NCBI RefSeq assembly: GCF_031769215.1
Contig: NW_026782586.1
Span: 62,001-126,000, forward strand
Direction of reading: 5' to 3'
Origin: Ylistrum balloti
Taxonomy: Eukaryota
Length of the DNA stretch: 64,000 nt
In this document: in pieces, positions 4,025 through 64,000 of the stretch
Layout of the letters: each line of letters opens with the position of its first letter
How positions within the stretch are numbered: the stretch's first letter is position 1
Notes under the pieces: model-generated
Database searches by the model: none
The model's input: only the letters and a program-made list of their open reading frames with translations
Told to the model about the DNA's origin: nothing
Made by a program: the position numbers and the translations under genes

Positions 4025-5982
4025 TTAAGGTGGGAAGATTGTCAATTCTTTTAAACACAATTCAGCAAGTCGTCTGTCGAAAGTCGAATCCGGTCTAGGG
4101 AAGTCTACTTCAGAAGTGCTGTGGCGATGTAAGCGTGGTACCATTGTAACATTAGATCGCCTTGGTAAATCTTGTGGTACATCAGGCTCTCGACGAGGCA
4201 AATAAGGCATTGGTAAAGAACTCAACTCCAAATCTCCCTTAACAACTGACCTTTTACTATACCTACTATTCCTATAATTTTGACATTTATCTTTTATTTT
4301 ATGCCGAAAGCAATATCCTATCACTAAGAAAGCAATGACTATACTTCCAATTATGAGGTATGTTTGGATAGAATTATCTGATTCCATAGGAACCAATTTG
4401 TGCATATTATCTAGTTCCGAAATCAAAGGATCAATAGGAATTTCTTTTATAGACTTCAACTTTGGAGGGATTTTGATTGAAGTTATATTTGGAAATTTCT
4501 GAGAAAATGGCTTCCATAGTTTAATTGATCCCATAAAGTAATTATGTATTAAGGCGTTAAAGTCATTAGACAAGTTAAAAGTACTTTCATAATGATGAAA
4601 GGATTGTAAGATCATGAACTCATTTGAAGCAGAGCAGCCCTCATTTAAGCTTATAATATCAATGGGACTTTTCGTGCTAAGGCTGTCTAAAGAGGAAGTA
4701 ACAGGACATTTTAGATGAAAGGTCAATGATTATTCTGAAACAACTACCCAGTGTCCATCAGACAAGTGTTGGGCTTGAGGAGTTGAAGTTCTAGCTTGCA
4801 CCACTGTGGTACAGTATTTATCCATATCTTTAATCCATCCCACAAAAAGATATATTATACACATTTCGTTTGACACTAAAGTATATATTGGATTACGAAA
4901 TCTGCAGTATTTCTTGACGCTACCTCCACATTCCTTAACTTCATCAAGAGATAAGATAACAAATTGTGTCTTGGCTTCATTCACCGCCAAGAGGCCAAAA
5001 GATTTGTTTGGTTTGTTTCCAAATAAGGTAATAAAAGACTGCGTGCTCTATACACAGTGAATTTATCTGATATATCAGTCAAAGGAATGGCAATGTCTAC
5101 CATTAAGTCGTCCTGTCCAATCAGGGTTGTACAAGTCACAGTCTTATAAAATGTCCAAAGGTCTACGTCAGGGTCAAAAGGAATTTGCATATTCATACTT
5201 AGCTTACTTTTAACATCAATTAGTAATTTCCTTAGGTCAGGGGGTGCAATAACAGTTGGCGAGAGATGTCCAAGAGACAACATATTAATTTGAAGCTTCA
5301 AGTGGTTTAAGTAATCTCTAGCTAAACCAACTATTTCCTTAGCTTCACTTAAGGCTCTATCTATCTTTGTATACGTATGCAAGTATTTGTCAATATCTTG
5401 AACTGAATGACTAAGATTCATCTCTAACTTCGCTAGATCAGTTAAAGTATCTATTACTTCATTAATATTCTTTCTGTTATTTGCTATTTGGCCTTGAGCA
5501 GTATGAAGGATAGTTAAACTTTCCTTAACAACATGTTGAAGGTGTACCTGATTATTTCTTAAGGTCCTAACATTAGTTTTGATTGTATCAATATCATCTT
5601 CATCTAATGTACCAAAAAGGAAGGACAGTGCCTTACCTACAATTGGAATCAACGCTCTTTTAGTTCGAGTCTGATGTAGTGTTTTTATATTTCTAAGTTC
5701 TTCTTGTTTTGTCACATCGACTTGAGGCCATCTTTTACATTTAGTCGACCGTCTACGAGATTTTGTTTGAATACATTCTTTTACTTTGCATGGTTGTTTC
5801 TTGAGTACTACTGTTTGAGGTTTCCTGATTTTAGCTACAGGTTTCTTGGTATAAGAAGGCTGACATCTTAGACCTAATAATGAACTACGTGAATAATGTG
5901 TATCTATTGGTTTATTACTTTTCAGACTTAAGTTTTCGAATCTACTTGTAAGGGATTCAGTTGGAGGTGCCTTGTAAGCCAT
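4025..5982 (-). pseudogene. env: F-type (class I fusion; baculovirus F/errantivirus-like) envelope glycoprotein, frameshifted into three ORFs
   Basis: Furin site plus fusion peptide RTKR|ALIPIVGKALSFLFGTLDEDD, heptad repeat, Cys-rich ectodomain (4730-4990), N-glycosylation sequons, TM YLIIGSIVIAFLVIGYCF and a cytoplasmic tail (4025-4726). Confidence 0.88.
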
Positions 5983-51351: not shown

Positions 51352-52385
51352 GTCGTGATTGCCAATTACATCATCTTCCTTCTATCTCACTCCCGATTGA
51401 TGAAATATTATATTAATCAATATATTCATTAACGTTAATTGCTAGAATGGATTTGCAGTGGTTTATTCTTAACTCCTTCCCGTTTATTTATCACATTTAC
51501 AGAAACTAGCGTGTGTTTCAGCGGGGCATGGACGTTTTCAGGATTCCGAGGCATGAAATAAAAGTGAACCCATGCATACTGTTTTAAGTATGAATAGCCA
51601 ATCGTGGTGTTTAAAAACAAGGAAGTATCCCATGATATAATCGCTGAATACATAGCAAAGGCACTGAATGTATAGACAAATTAAAGCATGCACACGATAA
51701 CCATGCATAACATCCGTGACAGCTCTCTTCCAGAATAAAATGAAATACAATGAGACTGATTCTCAAGGTCGACGGCTGTATGACAGCTCTTTAGGGGAAG
51801 ATTGTTTTTTTTTATTGATACGTGAGTGTTATGTTTTACATCCCTTCATTCTAAAAGACTTAGCTTAGTATCTTGTTTCTTAATATTGTATTTATTAGAT
51901 TATTAAATGGAAGTTATCGCCATTAGAACTCTTTTAAAATGAAGGTGCTTTTAGACATGTGATTGTGGCAACGTTGTAAACAATGAAGCATGGGCTTGAC
52001 GGCAAATGTCAAACTACATGTTCATATCTTTTTATTGCTGTCTTGTTGATATATCCTTATTTCTTATATTTATTTATATTACATTTGCAAATTCGTTCTG
52101 TATTATATTTCAAAATATGTTGTAAAACGTACACGTATGTGTAATTATATTTATCCTCCAAAACACCGTCCTTTTGAGACGTTTGAATACTGTTTAGAAC
52201 TCGTTTTCTATGTATACGGTTCATTCTCCATGTCATTTGTTTAAGATGTATGTGTGTACAGCGTTTTTTTATTTGCTATAACATATCTTGTGATCTTCTG
52301 GGTATTTTGCAGTACATATCAAGATTATTTTGTAGTGACATACAGAGTTAACTCCCCTGAATTATTCAACTCGTAGAAAAGAAAA

Positions 52386-54669
52386 ATGGCGTCGGTTTTG
52401 ACTTGCTGTTCAAAAAGGAAGCCCGAAATCAAAGGTAAAGACGGGATCTCGGTGAGTTCTTACTCGTAAGTAGTCTAATAAGTGTAAAAACGAGTATTTA
52501 ATAATGGTTGTGATTGAATGGAATGACATAATGTACCAATAGACAATCGAAAGGCAGACAGTGCTGCATTGCACCGGTGTTACCGGTAAAATATACCAAC
52601 TATCTTAGTGCAAGTTGAGCCGCGGGAACTCCTTCGTTCGGGAAAAAATGTATTTGGGTTAAATCAAATTAAGTCCATTTCAATGCATGTGCTGTGATAT
52701 AACATATGGGTTATTCAATAAGTATTGTGATTTAGGTGTTTATGTGCAAAATAGAAAGCATTTTGTGTGTGTGAAACTAATGGGAGGGGGGGGGTTCTGA
52801 ACTAGTACTGTACTGTACTAGTACTGTAGCATGAAATATAGGCCAAATGTACATGTAGATTGAAAATAGTAAGGTATTTACTGTATACTGTACATGTATA
52901 TATGCTTATACATCTCAAGCTAAAAATAGTTTTCTAATGCATTCACACTCTTCCACCCAAAGGTTCCAAGTACATCTAAAGCGTAAATGTAAAATTTCAT
53001 TTGTATATTGTAAAATCAATATTTTTTGCAGAGATTTGAACTTTGTTGAATTGCCAAAGGCAAGAAAGAGCAGTTTGAAATCAAAAGAGTGGAAAGCAGG
53101 ATTGTATCCGGTGGAAATCCTGTCCAGTCCAGAAGATGGTTATGTCAAAGTTCATTTTACAGGTATGTTGTATGTATAATGTAGTAAATACTATTGATAA
53201 TTATTGCTTTCAGCATTTTGTTGACTTTTTTATTATTTATTTTTAACTGTATACATATAATATATGCATGCATAAACTTTCATCATTAGGTGTGTAACAT
53301 TTAACACAGGCTGTTGAACAGTAACAGTTATGTTCTATAACTTAAAAACAAATTACCAATGTTATACCATTAATTAAGAATCTTCAGGATTTTTTTAAAC
53401 TCAAGTCTCCTTATATATATGCATAAATATGTGATCATTAACACTTTCGATACATGATTAATATTATATCATTGTATATAGAAAAATCTGTATAATCAAA
53501 TGTAATCTTTCAATTCCTCTAAAGAAAATCTTATGTCAGCCTTGTAAATACTAGCTGTTTCCTACCAACTCAGCTAGGGAGATCTTGTTATCTCATTCAG
53601 TAAAGTGTAACACTAGTTAGCGAGAGCAGGGACATATAATACGTATACTCTGTTATATACGTCCCTGGTGAGAGGTCATGAGTTCGACTCCTAGTGACGC
53701 ATTAAGAAAATTAATAATCTCTGTTACTCTTATGATAGTTTCGTCTGCTTTTTCTTCTTCTTCTTCATCTTAAAAAAATTATCAGGTATCAATGGATCAA
53801 TCATAGTAATACATTTTTGTTTGAAAACATTAATTTTAAAAACTACCTGGAGTAATACCTCCCTTGACAAAATAACACTATGGGATCATATTACATGTAA
53901 TGAAATGAAATACAAAACATTTTTCGAACAAAATGTTACAAATGTACCTTCTCATTTAACTCCCTGCCAGAAATTGAACGGATATTGGGGAGAGGAAGGA
54001 AGGGGGGGGGGGGAAGAAATTGTTTGAAGTCACTTCAAGCTAATAATTCAATGTACCGGTAAATGGTTTTTGCACACTAGATCAACAGGTGTATTTGATA
54101 AAATGCATCATTGAAATTTGTCATAGTTTATTTATGATGTAAAATCTTTATTGATAGGATGGAGTGCAAAGTATGACACTATCATCAAAGAGGCAGAACT
54201 TGAGACTAATGAATGTGAGGGGACACAGTCAATTGTGAATGTGGGTTCAATGATCAAGGACAGTCTGACAACAGGTTCAAGACTGGACAGCATTGTAAGG
54301 CTAAAAACTCCTATGGATGAAAGGGATTTTTCTTGTCTTCAAGAAAAGCTACACATGTTTAAAAAAACAGAAACAAAAACTGTGTACAGCTTAAGGTCAC
54401 GCTTCGACTTGAACTCTATTTTTGGGAAACATTGGGATTTTAGGATACTTAATAAGGAAGGAGATTGTGTTTATATTAAAACAGCAACAGTTAAGATTTA
54501 TCATAAATCTCTAAGAGAATCCAAAGAATTTGTTGTCCAAAAGACTGGTGGTCAGCTCAGGATTGAAGAATCATTTCGGCCAAGGGGCAAACAAGTCATA
54601 GTCAGTTTTGTGAAGTGCACTGGCAACTACAGAATGTTACCAAATTTGATGGATGACCCTCTCTTGTAA
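52386..54669 (+). CDS. Three-exon, 240-aa protein with a chromo-barrel/Tudor-knot-like motif (putative transposase partner)
   Basis: Exons 52386-52465 (CTC|GTAAGT), 53032-53162 (TTTTGCAG; ACAG|GTATGT) and 54158-54669 splice in frame (723 nt). The exon 2/3 junction rebuilds LYPVEI...GYVKVHFTGWSAKYD. Exon 1 is the least certain. Confidence 0.7.
53590..53700 (+). mobile_element. tRNA-derived SINE-like relic interrupted by a 41-bp mini-MITE (53627-53667)
   Basis: B-box-like GAGTTCGACTCC; insert CAGGGAC...GTCCCTG flanked by GCGAGAG/GTGAGAG. Confidence 0.45.
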
Positions 54670-54691
54670 TGCCAAAGTTAACATTTAAAAA

Positions 54692-56776
54692 ATGATCATC
54701 ATTTCTAGAGAAGAACTTTTTAATATACTATTGAAAAACTATTGGAATAAACCATTAAATATACCAACTGTTAAAGAAATATCAACAGCTATTGAAAGCA
54801 TCTGTACATTGAAATTTCTCCCAGATGAACATAGTTTGAAATGTTTACGTGCTGAACTTTTTAGGCTTAAACAAAATGGTTTACAAGCAAAAGTGAAGGG
54901 TGGGTCACAATTTAGAAAGTTTAAAGAACAATTAAAACATTCCAAATATAGTTGGGACGTCAAAGTTGATAGAGAAGAAACTCAGTTTTTAGTTGATAAA
55001 ATAAAGGCTGATACTGAAAAAGATCTAAGGGATAAAGAAAAAGAAAACAAAGAGTTGAGGGAAAAGTTATGTAATTTAAGTGCAGTAATTGGTACTCCTG
55101 AAGTGAAACCTATAAAGCGGAAAGCATTTGCTGATTGCACACCTAGTTGGCAGTCCAAAATTAGGAAAAAAAATGAAGAACATTGTAAAAAAGCACTGTC
55201 ATTTTTAAAAGATTCAGATGCTGTGCCTGTATCTGTCACAGTGGTCAGGAATGGAAAAGAGGAGGTGCTTAGATTGTATGAAACTGGTGAAAATAAGGAA
55301 AACCAGTCACTGGAGGCAAGTGAAACTTTAGATGATTTGAATGCTCTGATTTACATTTTAGATACATTTAACATCAGTAAAGATGCATATCATGAGTTGA
55401 GTATGGCATTTAAAACCCTCCCAAGAATTAACGCTGTTAATAAAGTTCTTTCAGATTTAAATTCAAAATTTGATATCATCCAAACTCCAGATGGACTTGG
55501 TGTTCAGCAGAGTTTGAAAAAACATTTACATGACGTACTTTCACATAAGATTAAAACTGACAAGAACTTTGCCCCTGCAGGTGAGGTAAAAATTAAAATA
55601 TCAGGGGATGGTACAAATATAGGGAAAAGGATTCATGTTGTTAATGTTACTTTTACTATTGTAAATGAAGAAAGGAGTGATCTAGTATTGGGTTTATCAG
55701 ATTTGGTTAAGGAAGTTGAGGAACTAGATGGCAATAGTCTAAAAGTACAACATAGAAGTTTTGATATTGAAATAGTTTTAGGCGGGGATTATAAATTTCT
55801 TCTGCTTGCTACTGGAATATCTTTAGTAGCTTGTCAGCATTTTTGCATTTACTGCACATGTAACAAGGCTGAAAAACTAGACCTCAGTAGAAATTGGTCT
55901 ATGGTTGATCCATCCAAAGGAGCTAGACTTGAGTATAAGTGTGAGGAATTGGTACAATCTTCATCACTAAAGAGAAAGAAGGTCAACAAGGGTTTTTTTT
56001 CTGTGAAGAATAAGCCACTTTTTCCAAGCATTACTCCAAATCGTGTTGTTATAGACCATTTGCATATGTATTTGAGAATATCTGACAAATTGTTCAATCT
56101 TCTCCTTTCTGACTTAAGATGCTTAGATAACATAAATGAGAACTCCACATTTACAAGTGTGTACGAGAAGAAAGACAAACTGAAGCATGTTTTGAAATTA
56201 GAAAATGTGCTACAGCAACTTGGAATACATTTTGAGATAGGTGTAAATCAAGAAACAAAGAAATTGGACTACAGAGACCTTACAGGTCCAGAGAAGCGTG
56301 TTTTGTTTGACCATTTTCATGCATCAGATTTGTTTGAGGATAAGGACAGAGCAGCAGAGATTCAGGAATTATGGGATGGCTTTAAAGACATAAATGAGTT
56401 AATAAAATCTGAAAATCCAGACCCTGATGAGATTGAAGCGAAGGCAAAAAGCTGGTGTGCTCTTTATATACAGGTGTATCAAACAAGAGATATTACCCCA
56501 TACATACACTTGTTGAGATATCATGTGGGAGAGATCATTAGAACTCATGGAACCATGGTAAGATTTAGCCAACAAGGACTAGAAAAACTCAATGATAATA
56601 TAACAAAGCAGTTTTTTAGGGGATCATGTCATAGAGGATTACCTGCATTGAAGCAAGTATTAGAGAAACAAAATCGGCTCTTATTTCTCGAGGGAAAAGG
56701 GAAAAGAACAAAAGAAAGTAGGAAATGTTCAAACTGTCATGGTGCAGACCATAACTCAAAGTCATGTGCCAAGTAG
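54692..56776 (+). CDS. RAG1/Transib/CMC-fold DDE transposase, 694 aa, uninterrupted ORF
   Basis: Ordered motifs KISGDG (D1), GGDYK (D2), CIYC, IDHLH, TPYIHLLRYH (H-x4-H), FSQQGLEKLN (E); NBD-like KRKAFADCTPSWQSKIRK; C-terminal CCHC knuckle CSNCHGADHNSKSC. Confidence 0.82.
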   Translation: MIIISREELFNILLKNYWNKPLNIPTVKEISTAIESICTLKFLPDEHSLKCLRAELFRLKQNGLQAKVKGGSQFRKFKEQLKHSKYSWDVKVDREETQFLVDKIKADTEKDLRDKEKENKELREKLCNLSAVIGTPEVKPIKRKAFADCTPSWQSKIRKKNEEHCKKALSFLKDSDAVPVSVTVVRNGKEEVLRLYETGENKENQSLEASETLDDLNALIYILDTFNISKDAYHELSMAFKTLPRINAVNKVLSDLNSKFDIIQTPDGLGVQQSLKKHLHDVLSHKIKTDKNFAPAGEVKIKISGDGTNIGKRIHVVNVTFTIVNEERSDLVLGLSDLVKEVEELDGNSLKVQHRSFDIEIVLGGDYKFLLLATGISLVACQHFCIYCTCNKAEKLDLSRNWSMVDPSKGARLEYKCEELVQSSSLKRKKVNKGFFSVKNKPLFPSITPNRVVIDHLHMYLRISDKLFNLLLSDLRCLDNINENSTFTSVYEKKDKLKHVLKLENVLQQLGIHFEIGVNQETKKLDYRDLTGPEKRVLFDHFHASDLFEDKDRAAEIQELWDGFKDINELIKSENPDPDEIEAKAKSWCALYIQVYQTRDITPYIHLLRYHVGEIIRTHGTMVRFSQQGLEKLNDNITKQFFRGSCHRGLPALKQVLEKQNRLLFLEGKGKRTKESRKCSNCHGADHNSKSCAK

Positions 56777-58633
56777 TTTTCTGTGTGTATCTATTAAAAA
56801 TGCAGCATGCTTTCTCAAGTAAAATCCAATCTATATTGTATTGAGGTTGTGTAACTGCCAGTTATTTGTTGATGTAAAAATGATATACCTGCAGATATAA
56901 AAAAAAGGCATTCAATTAATATGAAAGTGAAATATATGACTGCATTAAATACATGTACTGAAATGAAGTTTTTGTTGAAGTTTAACATGCAAATGCATGC
57001 ATAGATTTGTTTATCTCACTTGGATCTTGGTTTATACATGTATGTAATTTTATAATTGCTTTAAACATGTAATCACCTTTTTCTGTTATATTTTATTCCT
57101 ATTTTTCATTTATTATTATTATTGTTTTTGTTATCAGTGCAAAGCAGCACGTTATTTTTTCAAATAAATTTTGATTGCAAAAATTAATGGTTTAATGGTC
57201 TTTTATCACGTCTTTGTACTTAAGCTGAGAAGTATAAATTTCAGGCGCAGTGCAGAATACTCAGGTAGAAAATTGCGTCAACACCGTTTCGAAAAATAGC
57301 CGGGAAATCCTTTAAAAACGGCGGAAATCCTGTCTTTTTATATCCGATTTTTCATTGGTCAAGGGCGTCAAGGTCTCAATGACGTTATCCTATTTGTAAT
57401 AGACGATTGGTTCCGAAGATCAACATGTTTTTTATAGAATAAGCAGGACGGTGTGGTATTTCCTATTGATAAGTTGGGTACCCTAGTACCTTACATTGCT
57501 GTCAGTACGGACGATTTTCGTTATATTGCAAGAAGATTACGTAATTAAACAATGACCAAATATTCAAAGAAAAACATCCAGTTTGTAATAGAGATTCTGA
57601 GAAGTGGCCTTGAAAATAAAAACAATTTCTCCGAAAAATCGAGGTCGATAACTTGCAATATCGACAGGAAGAGCTCCAATTTCAAGGGAGATAATTTCCG
57701 ACTACAACTATATATTGATATGCCAAGTCCATAAAATGTCAAACATTTGTAGTTATCGGGGCCAGTGACTACACATACAAGTAAATAGTTTTATTTTCAT
57801 AGGAAAACATATGAGTGACTGCTTGTCTGGTGCAGTATGTAGAATTCAGCTAGGAATTCTATATCGGGTGATTGCCTTTCGGTATATGAACTTGTTTCAT
57901 GCCAATTTTCTCTGTTTTTAGATGAATACAGTGTTTCAACCCATTGGGGGTGAGATATGGTATTTCCACCCGAAGAGAAGATAATAGAGTCGGCAAAACC
58001 GGAACAACCGAGGGTTTATAACTTTAAAATATTTCCCGAGAACTGAGACCAACCTACTTCACCTAAAATGGGATGAATGGTTATGTTCTGCTCGCCCTTG
58101 TCTACGTGTCGTTACTCAAAATATATGTATAAAAAAAAAAACCAAACCCAATCGACTTTAATACGATAATAGTAAAATTTAAAACTCCGTACAGACACTG
58201 TATTACTACAGTAATTTATAGACTCTTTTTAAATGGAGGTTATTTTAATCGTGTCACTTGCTAACTCTACAGTCAAGCACGATGGCCAATATAAAACTAT
58301 TGGTTGTGATTGTTCAATGATCTCAGCATTGCCACATTTTATTTATATGTATCTTAATCAGAAGTCTAAATAATATGTTCTATAATTTCTGTTTCACATT
58401 CAATTTTAGAAAGAATATGGTATCATTGAACATCAATAAATTTTGCATTCAAAATTGTGGAATAAATAAAATGTTTATTTTTCTTTTTGCATATCAATAT
58501 GCAGTTACCCTGTAGATTTTAGATTACTAGAGGAAACTTGTTATCACACCCTTTTCTGGTATTCAATATCACACGTTCCTGGACACCCATCCTCTCTCTC
58601 TCTTTCTTTTGAAACAACATCAAATATCACGTT

Positions 58634-59269
58634 TCCGCACCAACTCCCCACTCCCTACAATTCTGTCTTCGCACCACCCCCACTCCCTACAATTCTGTCT
58701 CCGCACCACCTACCCACTCCCTACAATTCTATCTCCGCACCACCTCCCTACAATTCCGTCTCCACACAACCTCACCAAAATTCTTTCTCCGTACCACCTC
58801 ACCACAATTCTCTCTCCCCCCCCCCCCAACCCTACAATTCTGTCTCCGCACTACCTCACCACAATTCTGTCTCCGCACCACCTCCTCACTCCCTACAATT
58901 CTGTCTCCGCACCACCTCACCACAATTCCCCCCCCCCCCCCCAACCCTACAATTCTGTCTTCGCACTACCTCACCACAATTCTGTCTCCGCACCACCTCA
59001 ACACTCCCTACAATTCTGTCCCCGCACTACCTCACCACAATTCTGTCTCCGCACCACCTCCCCACTCCCTACAATTCTGTCTCCGCACCACCTCGACACT
59101 CCCTACAATTCTGTCTCCGCACCACCTCCCCACTCCCTATAATTCTGTCTCCGCACCACCTCACCACAATTCTGTCTCCGCACCACCTCCCCACTCCCTA
59201 TAATTCTGTCTCCGCACCACCTCACCACAATTCTGTCTCCGCACCACCTCCCCACTCCCTACAATTCTG
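58634..59269. repeat. Composite 34/27-bp C-rich minisatellite
   Basis: Core CAATTCTGTCTCCGCACCACCTC followed by CCCACTCCCTA or ACCA; two poly-C interruptions. Confidence 0.93.
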
Positions 59270-60346
59270 AATACAAACCGACAGGTGTATAGAACGTCAC
59301 AATGTATCAGACTTTTTAAAATATTTTTTTTTTGGTTAATTTTCCCGCCAAAACTAACTTCTGTTTGAAAACATGCGGATTGTAGCTGTACAATGCATGG
59401 ATTACACGGAATTGTAACGAAGGGTTGGGTTTTCCAATGATTTTATAGAAAATATGTATTTTCGTTTGACGATACTCTTTTTACGAACACAATAGATATA
59501 GATAAAATATCTATGTGTATACTAAGGGTGTGTAACATCAACACACACATGCCTTAAACAATTGATGTCATGTACATATATTATTGTCGCATGTTTTGGC
59601 CTTCGATATTCTGTTTGTCGTGATTATTGATACTGGTTATCCCCCCTTGGGGTAGAAATTGATTATTGATTTACGTAATAATTGACACATGAAAAAGCAT
59701 GCGTGTTTTAAACATAAGGATTAAAAACTGTATTTATCATATATATGTTATATATTCTGTCATCGAGAGTCGAAGAAAAACTGATCTACTGATCTTATGT
59801 CTCACATAATAAAAAGACTTGTGGCACAATTCTTTCCCCTATCCAAATAACAGCATCCCTTGATGACATGAGCGATGCTTTCGAATCCACCTTTTATCCA
59901 CTTTTACACCAATATGTCTTTCCAAATTCTTTATACCGTGATTATCACGTCCGCGACTTCTTATACCGAATCTAAGCATCCGTGATTTTTTTGGAATCTT
60001 TTTTTTATACTGAGATTTCACGTACGCGATATTTTGAGTCCAAGACGTCTACACTGAAATTTTACGTCCACGATTTTTCATCTATATTTTGGAATCGCAA
60101 TTTTTTTTACTGATATTTCGTATTCACGATTTCTGCTAAATTCGAATGTGCCAAAGCATTGAAATAGCAACTGAATTCTTGAGGTATAAAAAACTTAAGA
60201 GTGACGACAATGCTCTCTTTTCCCGTTTTAGAACTTATCATCGCACGTAAGCAAAGCCTGAAATAAAATGGTATATATTTTCTAACGCATGTTTTATTGA
60301 TATGTATTTATTGATAGATAAAACTGAAGATGACGTTGAAGGATTC

Positions 60347-61024
60347 CAGCACCATTCTTTCTACTACCATCCTGTCTCCCCCTTTCACCTTTTCCCTTGC
60401 CGCTTTCACAGCACCATTCTTCCTACTTCCATCCCGTCTCCCCCTTTCACCTTTTCCCTTGCCGTTTTCATAGTACCATTCTTCCTACTACCATCCTGTC
60501 TCCCCCTTTCACCTTTTCCCTTGCCGCTTTCACAGCACCATTCTTCCTACTACCATCCTGTCTCCCCCTTTCACCTTTTCCCTTGCGGCTTTCACAGTAC
60601 CATTCTTCCTACTACCATCCTGTCTCCCCCTTTCACCTTTTCCCTTGCCCGCTTTCATAGTACCATTCTTCCTACTACCATCCTGTCTCCCCCTTTCACC
60701 TTTTCCCTTGCGGCTTTCATAGTACCATTCTTCCCATTACCATCCTGTCTCCCCCTTTCACCTTTTCCATTGCCCGCTTTCATAGTACCATTCTTCCTAC
60801 TACCATCCTGTCTCCCCCTTTCACCTTTTCCCTTGCCCGCTTTCATAGTACCATTCTTCCTACTACCATCCTGTCTCCCCCTTTCACCTTTTCCCTTGCC
60901 GTTTTCATAGTACCATTCTTCCTACTACCATCCTGTCTCCCCCTTTCACCTTTTCCCTTGCCGCTTTCATAGTACCATTCTTCCTATTACCATCCTGTCT
61001 CCCCTTTCACGTGCCCGCTTTCAT
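60347..61024. repeat. 62/63-bp pyrimidine-rich minisatellite, 11 copies
   Basis: Unit CTTCCTACTACCATCCTGTCTCCCCCTTTCACCTTTTCCCTTGCCGCTTTCATAGTACCATT. Confidence 0.95.
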
Positions 61025-61176
61025 ATTTTTATTTGTTTTACATCAGATGACATCACGACAGCTGTACTATTGTCGAGACATTTGATAATCCCTACTTTAC
61101 TTGATATGGATGTGAAGTGGTTTTTACTGCAGAATTTATCAGTTGATGGTGGTTATATTGCATACCTCTACATCAG

Positions 61177-64000
61177 TGTAAATTACCCGTATCTTCCGAT
61201 CACCTCCGTTCGTCTGTCCTAATGCATAGACGAACATCTACCGTGTAAGCGTAATGCACGATCTGTACATTGTGTAGACATTGTATCTAAGTTATACTCT
61301 AAATCTAACATAAGCCCCGTAAGCATCGTATAGGAGTATATTGCTTTGCTTAGACGTTTCAGCGATAGACTAAACAACACGTTTCTTCTCAGCTCCATGT
61401 TTGTTTTTTATTCCCAGAACGAGGCTGTCATATAACCAATACAGGAGAGGATCTAAGAGAGATAACTCTTACGAGATTACAACTACTATAGATCATTACA
61501 ACTCCCCTTTTGAAAATAGGTATTTTATCTTTAAAAGTTCAATTGTCATTGGAGGGAGCATATGATATATATGTAACTTGTATTTTGTGGTTAATTGACC
61601 ATACTGAAACAAAATAGCTCGAAATTAAACTGCATGTTGATACATGTCTGAAACTTAATATTTCTTTGTTGTTTATAATATTGTCACAGTTTCTAAGTAA
61701 TAGTGTATATCCAACCCTCTTGATTGAGAATTATATGTGGAACACAAGCAACAAATAAAATGTGATAATTTTGCAATTATGAGTGACCAAATTCACCAGA
61801 AGATAATGGACCAAAAATAGTTTTGATTTTGAACTCTTTACTGATGAATTTTATCAAGCATAACTACCAGGATCAGGATAGACTGTCCTGCCTGAGACCT
61901 AACATTAAAAAGGGGATTATTCTGCCCCTGTGCACTTCACATCTCATAATCTTTGAATCGTGCTGGCAGTTTCACACTTCTGCCGTATTTTGTCTTCATA
62001 CTCGGAGAGTTTCCGGTGGGCATTGCTAGTGCTGTCGCCTTATGCTTTGGCGTGTCACTAGGTTTCGTAGTTGATTCTTGCTCCATGAAATCAGGAATGT
62101 CCTCTGTGTTTCTCCTGAATGATGTCTCGACGATTTCGACGAAACTTCTCACCATCAGGTGTCACTACTGTGTAGGACCTCGGGTATTCAGAGTGATTAT
62201 AAATGTTTCCTGGAGTCCATTGTCCTCTGTGTTTAAAACGAATCTTATCTCCGTCATTTAATTCCGACAGGCGTTTGGCTCCAATATCGAAATATTTTTT
62301 CTGCTTTTGCTGCGATTTCTGTCTGGTTTTCTGAACGTGTTCTGAAGACACTACACGTGGTTGAAGTTTAAGTTGGGTAACTGGTAGCACAGATCTAAGC
62401 TCTCTGCTCATGAGTAGTTGTGCTGGTGATTCTGTATCCGTAGGCGAGTTCCTGTACTCGAGTAGAGCAAGATACGGATCTTGCCCGTTAGCGTTGGTTT
62501 TCTCAAGGATGCGTTTCATGGTTTGTACAGATTTCTCTGCAAAGCCGTTCGCTTGAGCAAATAGGGACTTGATGTTGTGTGTTTAAACTTCCACTTTGTC
62601 GCAAATGTTTTGAATTCGGATGAGGAATATTGTGGACCATTGTCGCTCCTCACTTCAAACGGTATTCCATGTCGTGCAAAGATAGATTTCAGGTGTGTTA
62701 TTACTGTTACACTTTTAGTGTTCTCCAACTTTGCTACCTCAAAGTATCGGGAATAGTAATCAGTGACTATCAGGAAGTCTGACTGGTTCCATGAGAATAA
62801 GTCGGTTCCCACAACTTGCCACGGTCCACTTGGTACAGGTGTTGGCTTCAAAGGTTCTTTCTGATTGTTGTTCCTCATATCCATACAGGTACTACACCTT
62901 GATATCATGTCAGCAATATCAGTGTTCATGCCATGCCAATAAACAATACTTCTGGCTCTGAGTTTGGTTTTTTCTATACCAAAGTGACCTACATGAAGAT
63001 CTGACAGTATTTCATCTTGGAGACTTTCCGGAATTACTATCCTTTCTCCTTTGAGCACTATGCCTTCGTTGATAGTTAGTTCATTTCTAAGTTTCCAAAA
63101 CTCTTGTAGGTTTTTTGTTAGAACATTTTTATTTTCTGGCCAGCCATTCTCTATCAATGCCTTAACTTGACTGAGTTGTTCATCCTCGTCTGTTCGAGTG
63201 CGAATTTGATCCATTTTATTGACAGAGACAGGTAGACTGTTCAAAACAGTGTGTACATGACAATTGAGTTCTTCATCCATGTTCCCATCCTTGTTGGGAA
63301 GATATGCACGAGAAAGTGTGTCCGCTACTACTAATTCCTTGCCTGGCCTGTAGATTAGAGTGAAATCATAGCGTTGTAGACGTAGAAGCATTCTCTGTAA
63401 CCTAGGTGGCGCTTGAGATAGGGGTTTCTTTAGTATGGCTTCCAACGGCTTGTGATCACTTTCTACAGTTAGTGCCTGCGATCCACAGGTGTAGTTGTTG
63501 AAGCGTTCTAAAGCAAAGGTAACTGCAAGAAGTTCCTTCTCTATTTGTGCATATCTTGACTCTGTGTCAGTCATTGCTCTAGAGGCAAATGCTATGGGCT
63601 TATTCCTCTGTAGAATTACAGCACCTAATCCGTATTTTGATGCATCTGCACTTACGGTGGTTGGTAATCTTGGTCATAAAATGCTAGTACTGGCTCTTTT
63701 GACAATATGCCTAGTATTTGCTTGAAAGCGTCATCCTGACTTTTGTTCCACTGAAATGCGACATCCTTTCTGAGCAACTCTCGAATCGGCTGTGTGATGG
63801 TTGACATGTTTGGTATGAACTTGGCTAAGTAATTGACAGTTCCAAGTAGTCTCTCTACTCCTTTTTTGTCAACTGGTCGGGGCATCTCAGTAATTGCACT
63901 CAGTTTTTCTGGATCTGGTTTTACACCAGCGGCAGACAGTCTGTGACCTATATATGTGACCTCATTTTCGCTGAACCTGCATTTGTCCTTGTTCAAGGTG
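61177..64000 (-). mobile_element. 3' part of a Ty3/gypsy element, Mag-lineage-like (runs off window)
   Basis: pol on the - strand; PPT AAAAGGGGAGT followed by TGTAATG at 61500 (3' LTR start); AATAAA in the LTR. LTR end is uncertain (61177 or 61244). Confidence 0.85.
61937..63996 (-). pseudogene. pol: pol (RT end, RNase H, integrase) of Mag-like gypsy, frameshifted
   Basis: VERLLGTVNYLAKFIPN; SRYAQIEKELLAV; ESDHKPL; LHVGHFG...CSTC; VGTDLF; RSDNGPQY; DPYLALLEYRNSP; terminal TKYGRSVKLPARFKDY. Confidence 0.9.

Follow-up and report, generated by a model that had tools for sequence, protein, structure and literature searches.

Do the two neighbouring genes at positions 52386–56776 of a 64,000-nucleotide stretch of Ylistrum balloti DNA (the window; contig NW_026782586.1, positions 62,001–126,000) form a mobile element in which a RAG1-type transposase travels with a chromatin reader, or are they a domesticated host gene pair? 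RAG1–RAG2 is the textbook transposase with a histone-reading partner, and the origin of that partnership is still debated. A first interpretation from the letters alone, the sequence-only reading, had proposed either a recently active element or a domesticated pair; the first option was upheld and the second was discarded. There is very little doubt that the locus holds a two-gene transposon with a RAG1-type fold, belonging to the CACTA/Mirage/Chapaev/Transib–RAG1 (CMCT) clade. It is likely a recently active cut-and-paste element, in which the upstream gene (ORF1; ORF, open reading frame) encodes a conserved accessory protein, some 230–245 amino acids long, of the downstream transposase (ORF2).

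The transposase and its deleted copy in the window

The transposase frame spans 54692–56776 on the plus strand and encodes 694 amino acids in the window copy and 713 amino acids in intact copies. All motifs claimed for it are present in the RAG1 order: SGDG (residues 304–307), GGDYK (364–368), CIYC (385–388), DHLH (455–458), H606-x4-H611, QGLEKLN (628–634) and a C-terminal zinc knuckle (679–692). The RAG1-core-like catalytic residues D306 (55607–55609), D366 (55787–55789) and E631 (56582–56584) are invariant or nearly so in the family; in the CxxC motif (55844–55855), C385 never varies and C388 hardly does. Spacings are those of RAG1, with 19 residues from D366 to C385, four between the two histidines (56507–56524) and 20 from H611 to E631. 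The knuckle, read from sequence as CX2CX4HX4C at 56726–56767, is kept in most family members, and profile matches to knuckle proteins are weak.

No Pfam model matches the transposase or five relatives, even at E 10, and a phmmer search of the single transposase against the PDB returned noise only. A profile built from 21 family members retrieved RAG1 chains from the PDB at E 1.4e-6 and amphioxus RAG1L at E 0.014. In the profile alignment, the family segment LGGDxKF...CIWCKC falls onto RAG1 'GYDEKLV...YICTLC', so that C385 and C388 align with the ZnC2 cysteines, and TPYxHxxxxH...QQGLEKLN falls onto 'NYFHKTLAH...ASEGNES', which places H606 and H611 on the ZnH2 histidines. The aligned RAG1 segments presumably hold D708, C727/C730, H937/H942 and E962. 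As judged by profile comparison, the listed motifs are not a product of chance, because the family profile matches RAG1 chains and brings D366, E631 and the zinc-site residues into register with their RAG1 counterparts.

An AlphaFold2 model of the intact 713-residue protein (P0001; mean predicted local distance difference test score, pLDDT, 85) places D306 on strand β1. When the model was compared with the PDB by Foldseek, all 49 matches at E <= 0.001 were RAG1, BbRAGL or HzTransib, the best at 5e-14. Similarly, VIA-align gave Z 27.5 to RAG1 (449 residues aligned, root-mean-square deviation (rmsd) 4.1, model residues 206–692), Z 24.8 to BbRAGL and Z 23.5 to HzTransib (403 aligned, rmsd 3.7), followed by the P element (Z 12.9), ISCth4 (10.3) and Hermes (8.8). 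The RAG1/Transib fold predicted by the sequence-only reading is thus borne out by profile and structural comparisons alike.

The structural alignment starts at model residue ~207 and spans RAG1 residues ~458 to 1008, presumably the core that follows the nonamer-binding domain. A basic segment resembling that domain had also been proposed; the alignment to RAG1 presumably begins after the domain, and the proposal is not confirmed. Helices, among them a long one at 94–133, make up most of the first 200 residues of the model, together with short strands, and no cysteines cluster there. Among 21–23 aligned family members, no conserved Cys or His column precedes residue 244. The transposase N-terminus contains no Chapa/NZD zinc finger, because these 200 residues lack conserved Cys or His.

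Relatives in large protein collections are all named 'uncharacterized' and carry no Pfam domain. Their sources are the scallops Argopecten, Pecten and Mizuhopecten, the starfish Patiria miniata and further eukaryote assemblies; a word search with the profile reached no annotated distant relatives.

The window copy is itself a deletion derivative. Both of its frames are open, as had been stated, and the transposase frame carries a 57-bp in-frame deletion that other copies lack. The junction lies at 55676–55683 on the plus strand, between 55679 and 55680, and at the DNA level the deleted segment sits between two AGTG tetranucleotides, which form the microhomology. A contig from another individual continues after 55679 with the undeleted letters. 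The lost 19 amino acids correspond to residues 329–347 of P0001 and lie between the two Asp residues of the catalytic triad; the segment is present in all other family members and, in the AlphaFold2 model, contains strand 336–342, β3 of the RNase H-like sheet. Because the deletion takes out β3, the product of the open frame in the window copy is probably catalytically dead. Full-length frames of 713 residues, with 0–5 substitutions, are present in five other copies, and these intact sister copies could supply transposase to the window copy in trans.

Ends, copies and insertion without target-site duplication

The whole transposon copy occupies 52315–57722 on the plus strand (5,408 bp). Its boundaries were drawn by blastn comparison of the window with 10-kb loci that hold seven other copies, in which similarity begins and ends at the same two points, and by contigs with the empty site from three sequencing runs. 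The sequence-only reading had seen neither convincing terminal inverted repeats nor a convincing target-site duplication, and had suggested that a multi-copy alignment would define the ends. That alignment does define them, and the verdict on repeats divides: the inverted repeats exist, while the duplication is truly absent. The left repeat (52315–52336, plus strand) starts 5'-CATATCAA, as it does in other copies. The right repeat (57701–57722, plus strand) ends TTGATATG-3', and reads of other insertions diverge at 57722. The left end, CATATCAAGATTATTTTGTAGT, and the reverse complement of the right end, CATATCAATATATAGTTGTAGT, match at 17 of 22 positions, the first 8 being identical. The termini are of the form 5'-CA...TG-3', with CATATC...GATATG in the lineage of the window copy (lineage A) and CATGTC...CAGTATG in a second lineage (lineage B).

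At least 8 copies of the element are present in the genome at 95–99.9% DNA identity. In a six-frame genome search, the transposase was found in five further copies at 99–100% protein identity, as degraded copies and in dozens of lineages at 40–60% identity. An empty allele of the window site was recovered from contigs of three public runs from two studies (Logan): one 2-kb contig per run links 52314 straight to 57723, skipping 5,408 bases with no letter added or lost. The window insertion is therefore polymorphic. Together, the five intact, near-identical copies and the polymorphic insertion suggest that the family may still be active in the scallop.

These observations bear directly on domestication. 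A host gene pair would account for two open frames, each annotated by NCBI as an ordinary protein-coding locus; it would not be expected to recur at unrelated sites as 8 or more near-identical copies that share inverted ends, nor to be absent from three other data sets, and the window transposase is without a core strand. A domesticated pair is excluded on the grounds that the insertion is polymorphic and the element multi-copy with inverted ends, and the probability left to it is negligible.

The filled site reads GCAGTA, the element, then CCAAGT; the empty site reads GCAGTACCAAGT; the two alleles differ by the element exactly. Flanking direct repeats were seen in none of the four other lineage-A copies with both flanks readable. 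Similarly, they were absent from all three copies of lineage B, which are 99.4% identical to one another, share ~44% transposase identity with lineage A and have the ends CATGTCGTGAAATAATTG...CAAATATTTCACAGTATG, also CAT...ATG. It is highly likely that the element inserts without a target-site duplication. Against this stands the sampling, in that a true empty allele was compared for one insertion and the other copies were judged by their lack of flanking repeats; a search for paralogous empty sites found none for two other copies.

No target motif is evident at the 7 other insertion sites. A literature search for duplication-free precedents among eukaryotic cut-and-paste elements gave Spy alone, a member of the PIF/Harbinger–ISL2EU group that inserts between AAA and TTT. 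Like the scallop element, Spy is a eukaryotic DDE cut-and-paste transposon that inserts without a target-site duplication (PMC4122938), but it belongs to an unrelated transposase superfamily. Within the CMCT clade, duplications of 2–5 bp accompany CA...TG ends overall (PMC12730594). The duplications measure 5 bp in Transib, certain relatives having 3 and 2 bp (preprint 10.64898/2026.08.26.747230); in Chapaev they measure 3–4 bp and the ends are CAC...GTG (PMC4079192).

Several copies and contigs show further peculiarities. The left terminus of one otherwise intact copy (L030:2880-2895) reads GATATGGCG instead of CATATCAAG, and another otherwise intact copy (L029) has lost the first four bases of its left end; these altered ends may no longer be recognised. 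A degraded copy (L033:7080-8130, on G000:C304) lies within a satellite of 33-bp units (GTAGAATTACACGTCCCTTGTAACAGAGGGGAG) and was unusable for the duplication test, since its right end is truncated. The DNA of other individuals contains a rearranged or nested form of the element, in which contigs from two runs link 57630 back to 54679 with TTAAAA between. A lone contig from a single run links 54379 to 57781, 59 bp beyond the right end, and may therefore be chimeric. At 53668–53863, within the ORF1 intron, contig depth is 3–5 times that of the rest of the element and the loose ends are T/C-rich simple sequence; this segment is therefore a simple repeat common to other loci. Just downstream of the element, at 58001–62000, GC skew is strongly negative (-0.41, -0.32), unlike the rest of the window.

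The partner gene and its linkage to the transposase

The spliced upstream gene of ~240 residues that had been read from the letters corresponds to an NCBI model of a 245-residue uncharacterized protein (P0028). Its exon at 52937–53162 on the plus strand encodes an N-terminal tail and, from ~53090, the first half of a predicted barrel, and matches family profile positions 7–62 at E 2e-11. A GT..AG intron of 995 bp follows (53163–54157, plus strand; GT donor at 53163), dividing the barrel between G76 and W77, such that the motif YVKVHFTG|WSAKYD straddles it. The last exon (54158–54669, plus strand; profile positions 61–230, E 3.5e-52) encodes the second barrel half to ~54210 and an alpha/beta C-terminal domain at ~54220–54666, and ends with the stop. 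The same G|W split recurs with different intron lengths in the diverged paralogs L012 and L019 and in Argopecten (L042). The ATG at 52387, a putative alternative start, finds no support in the family profile.

An exhaustive HMMER search with P0028 found 113 relatives, mostly of 200–250 amino acids, which align from around residue 35 through to the C-terminus and share the consensus LYxxEV...VKVHYxGWSxxYDEW. When 36 members were searched singly, Pfam assigned an MSL3_chromo-like domain to 14, Tudor-knot to 7, MBT to 4 and Chromo to 3. The ORF1 profile retrieved from the PDB the MBT repeats of L3MBTL3 and L3MBTL1 (9e-11 to 1e-8; L3MBTL3 best at 9e-11). It also retrieved the chromo barrels of MRG701 (2e-7), Eaf3 (4e-7), MRG15 (6e-6) and MOF together with a domain of ARID4A, all between 2e-7 and 6e-6. 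The earlier likening of the upstream motif to Tudor-knot or chromo-barrel readers accordingly agrees with the family profile, which matches MBT and chromo barrels.

In an AlphaFold2 model of ORF1 (pLDDT 85.7, the C-terminal part mostly >90), residues 52–93 superpose on MRG15, Tudor and HP1/Polycomb chromodomains with an rmsd of 1.5–2.5 Å. Residues [YF]74, W77 and Y81 are nearly invariant in the 36 relatives, with the F-x2-W-x3-Y spacing of the aligned L3MBTL3 segment 'HFDGWNNCYDYW', and their positions are presumably those of the aromatic cage of MBT and chromo barrels. At the level of family profiles, it is supported that ORF1 carries a Royal-family domain of chromo-barrel/MBT type.

The C-terminal alpha/beta domain (residues 97–245), modelled as part of the whole of ORF1, has no fold match at Z >= 5, and an Atlas feature search with the same residues gave no usable match. 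For the whole ORF1 model, Foldseek found nothing significant, and an Atlas shape search returned only template modelling (TM) scores < 0.3, with Royal-domain clusters among the rows.

From the domain family, it appears that ORF1 may be a methyl-lysine-dependent chromatin adaptor, a role given slightly less than an even chance. Several points weigh against it or against the reading of the element as a whole. Pfam finds nothing for the ORF1 pieces of the window, and the window ORF1 alone falls below its threshold (E 0.005). The structural Z of the barrel is only 4–4.9 over 40 residues, as is usual at that size, and the last W of 'YDEW' in most relatives is I in the window element. No RNA run holding the element was found, and both expression and the splice pattern of ORF1 are predictions. 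The adaptor role and contact between ORF1 and the transposase are likewise predicted.

A different function would also fit a required partner: ORF1 may be needed for transposition without reading histones, binding instead the element ends, another nucleic acid or the transposase. In DNA transposons with two proteins the second one usually serves end binding or nuclear import, as is established for Harbinger and En/Spm, and ORF1 could be likened to the Myb-like second protein of PIF/Harbinger or to TnpA of En/Spm. Moreover, the C-terminal domain without a match is the larger and best-conserved part of ORF1, and Royal-type barrels also bind nucleic acids, a PWWP–single-stranded DNA complex being among the structure matches. 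Set against these points, the positions that match cage aromatics are nearly invariant and the best ORF1 profile matches are methyl-lysine readers, and a non-reader ORF1 is considered somewhat less likely than the adaptor, to which it is a serious competitor.

Whatever its biochemical role, ORF1 is tied to the transposase over long evolutionary distances. Within the Ylistrum genome, ORF1-like frames lie directly upstream of the transposase in many lineages with 40–60% transposase identity, two of which keep the barrel exon and the G|W split. The sequence-only reading had proposed co-occurrence across genomes as a check, and the two genes stand side by side in all 7 loci examined from outside the genome, in an order that varies. 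They are in tandem in three (Patiria miniata, GCA_029531755.1 and Argopecten irradians) and convergent, tail to tail, in the other four, which come from four ENA eukaryote assemblies. In the window the transposase ATG follows the ORF1 stop after a gap of 22 bp; in Patiria miniata the gap is 15 bp and there is no intron, and in Argopecten irradians the intron position is the same. This linkage persists down to ~25% protein identity, across phyla and in two orientations, which argues for a functional two-protein module and not a passenger. Co-folding of the intact transposase with ORF1 scored 0.00 in a run that did not use alignments, and gives no evidence either way.

Two duplications of the partner gene were encountered. 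Nine head-to-tail ORF1-like frames, ~40% identical to ORF1 and each open for 203 amino acids, repeat at a period of exactly 1,567 bp at G000:C373:298219-311276, followed by transposase fragments at 311598–312560; this array is a partner-gene segment amplified in tandem. In Argopecten irradians, two equal-scoring partial duplicates of the ORF1 C-terminus (L042:4246-4500 and 4586-4840) sit between the full ORF1 and the transposase.

Both the Argopecten duplicates and the nine-unit Ylistrum array would suit the view that ORF1 is a passenger, a piece of a host gene that was picked up and does nothing for the element, and DNA transposons do pick up such pieces. A passenger is nonetheless very improbable: full-length ORF1 stands intact beside the transposase in a mollusc, an echinoderm and four other eukaryote assemblies, at loci among which protein identity falls to ~25% and gene order varies.

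The small gaps in the window and in Patiria raise the further question of whether ORF1 and the transposase are one gene. Splicing would then take out the ORF1 stop or connect upstream exons with the transposase frame, yielding a chromo-barrel–transposase fusion or, as En/Spm does, alternative products. In favour of this, animals seldom use bicistronic mRNAs, and ORF1 is itself spliced. Such a fusion is hard to reconcile with the four foreign loci in which the genes lie on opposite strands, with the transposase N-terminus M-[IV]-x-[LIF]-[SF]-[RK], which is kept from its own ATG in scallop relatives, or with the NCBI models, which describe two genes. A single spliced gene is therefore judged improbable, and because four loci have the convergent layout, the two proteins can act as separate polypeptides.

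Relationship to known systems, mechanism and meaning

The family has a DDE triad on an RNase H-like fold, the CxxC and HxxxxH motifs and CA...TG termini in common with the CMCT clade, and departs from it in lacking a 2–5 bp target-site duplication. It is placed near the RAG1/Transib/Chapaev part of the clade, outside Transib and Chapaev proper. In an Atlas language-model search, DUF1280-bearing clusters ranked at the top (0.91, 0.90) with RAG1 clusters close behind; likewise, the nearest Atlas structure (shape) cluster bears DUF1280, again with RAG1 clusters close behind. The transposases that DUF1280 stands for are those of Chapaev, and they group with RAG1 (PMC3985635). No match to DUF1280 (PF06918) was found in 7 family proteins at E up to 10, nor in the whole genome, where the search is a weak one, as controls were equally silent.

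Strict membership of Transib was rejected, since the ends are CATATCA or CATGTCG and not CACAATG-like, and there is no 5-bp duplication. Strict membership of Chapaev or Chapaev3 was likewise rejected. The family has no CAC...GTG ends, no 3–4 bp (TWA) duplication and no PF06918 match, and it lacks the Chapa zinc finger, which Chapaev carries at its N-terminus (PMC4411706).

Among characterised systems, RAG1–RAG2 and RAGL are alike in their core fold (RAG1 ~458–1008, Z 24.8–27.5) with DDE, CxxC and HxxxxH residues aligned, and in having a second element-encoded protein with a chromatin-reader-type module. RAGL also resembles some lineages of the scallop element's family in its convergent gene pair. 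The partners differ: that of the scallop element is a predicted Royal barrel with a small alpha/beta domain, in ~240 amino acids, whereas theirs is a kelch propeller with a PHD finger, which the RAGL partner may lack. The scallop transposase shares only ~14–18% identity with RAG1, is not matched by RAG1 Pfam models at E up to 10 and, unlike RAG1, has no N-terminal zinc finger or RING domain. In contrast to RAG/RAGL, the scallop element ends in CAT rather than CAC, makes no 5-bp duplication and has its genes in tandem. Transib (HzTransib, PDB 6PQX) is alike in fold (Z 23.5 over 403 residues) and in CA...TG termini, but it is a single-gene element with a CACAATG-like heptamer and duplications of 5 bp (preprint 10.64898/2026.08.26.747230), whereas the scallop element carries a second gene and an extra CCHC knuckle, has CATATCA or CATGTCG at its ends and makes no duplication.

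By analogy, the combination could be compared with the chromovirus integrase chromodomain, the LEDGF PWWP domain with HIV integrase and the RAG2 PHD finger, each of which couples a methyl-lysine-reader-type module to a DDE recombinase. In the scallop element, a DNA transposon, the module with its predicted reader role would be encoded by the element as a protein of its own.

It is proposed that the transposase would pair two CAT-ended repeats and then cut and join DNA by DDE catalysis in the manner of RAG and Transib. Because a target-site duplication is missing, the two strand transfers would attack directly opposite phosphates, and not sites staggered by 5 bp. ORF1 would tether, license or regulate the transposase on chromatin through methyl-lysine recognition. 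Tethering of this kind is exemplified by RAG2, whose PHD finger recognises H3K4me3, by LEDGF acting with HIV integrase and by the chromodomains of chromovirus integrases.

Neither the fold class nor the concept of pairing a RAG-type transposase with a reader is new. A search of Pfam, NCBI names and the literature, Repbase and Dfam lying outside it, turned up no record of the family, of its Royal-domain partner or of its integration without duplication; counting against novelty, Repbase or Dfam may already list the family under a CMC label. A bolder proposal is put forward tentatively and given clearly less than an even chance: that the family is an undescribed superfamily-level RAG1/Transib-type lineage across several animal phyla, with duplication-free integration and a dedicated chromatin-reader subunit, independently evolved or ancestral.

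The element offers a living relative of the RAG1–RAG2 pair, with a RAG1-fold transposase accompanied by another kind of reader-type protein in tandem and convergent layouts, and it lets the recurrence of reader partners in RAG1-type enzymes be tested experimentally. If true, duplication-free insertion by a RAG1-fold enzyme would be new for the clade and would bear on the spacing of active sites on target DNA, implying a target-capture geometry unlike that of RAG and Transib. If the reader subunit guides or licenses the transposase, the scallop element would represent a second natural version of the RAG1–RAG2 division of labour.

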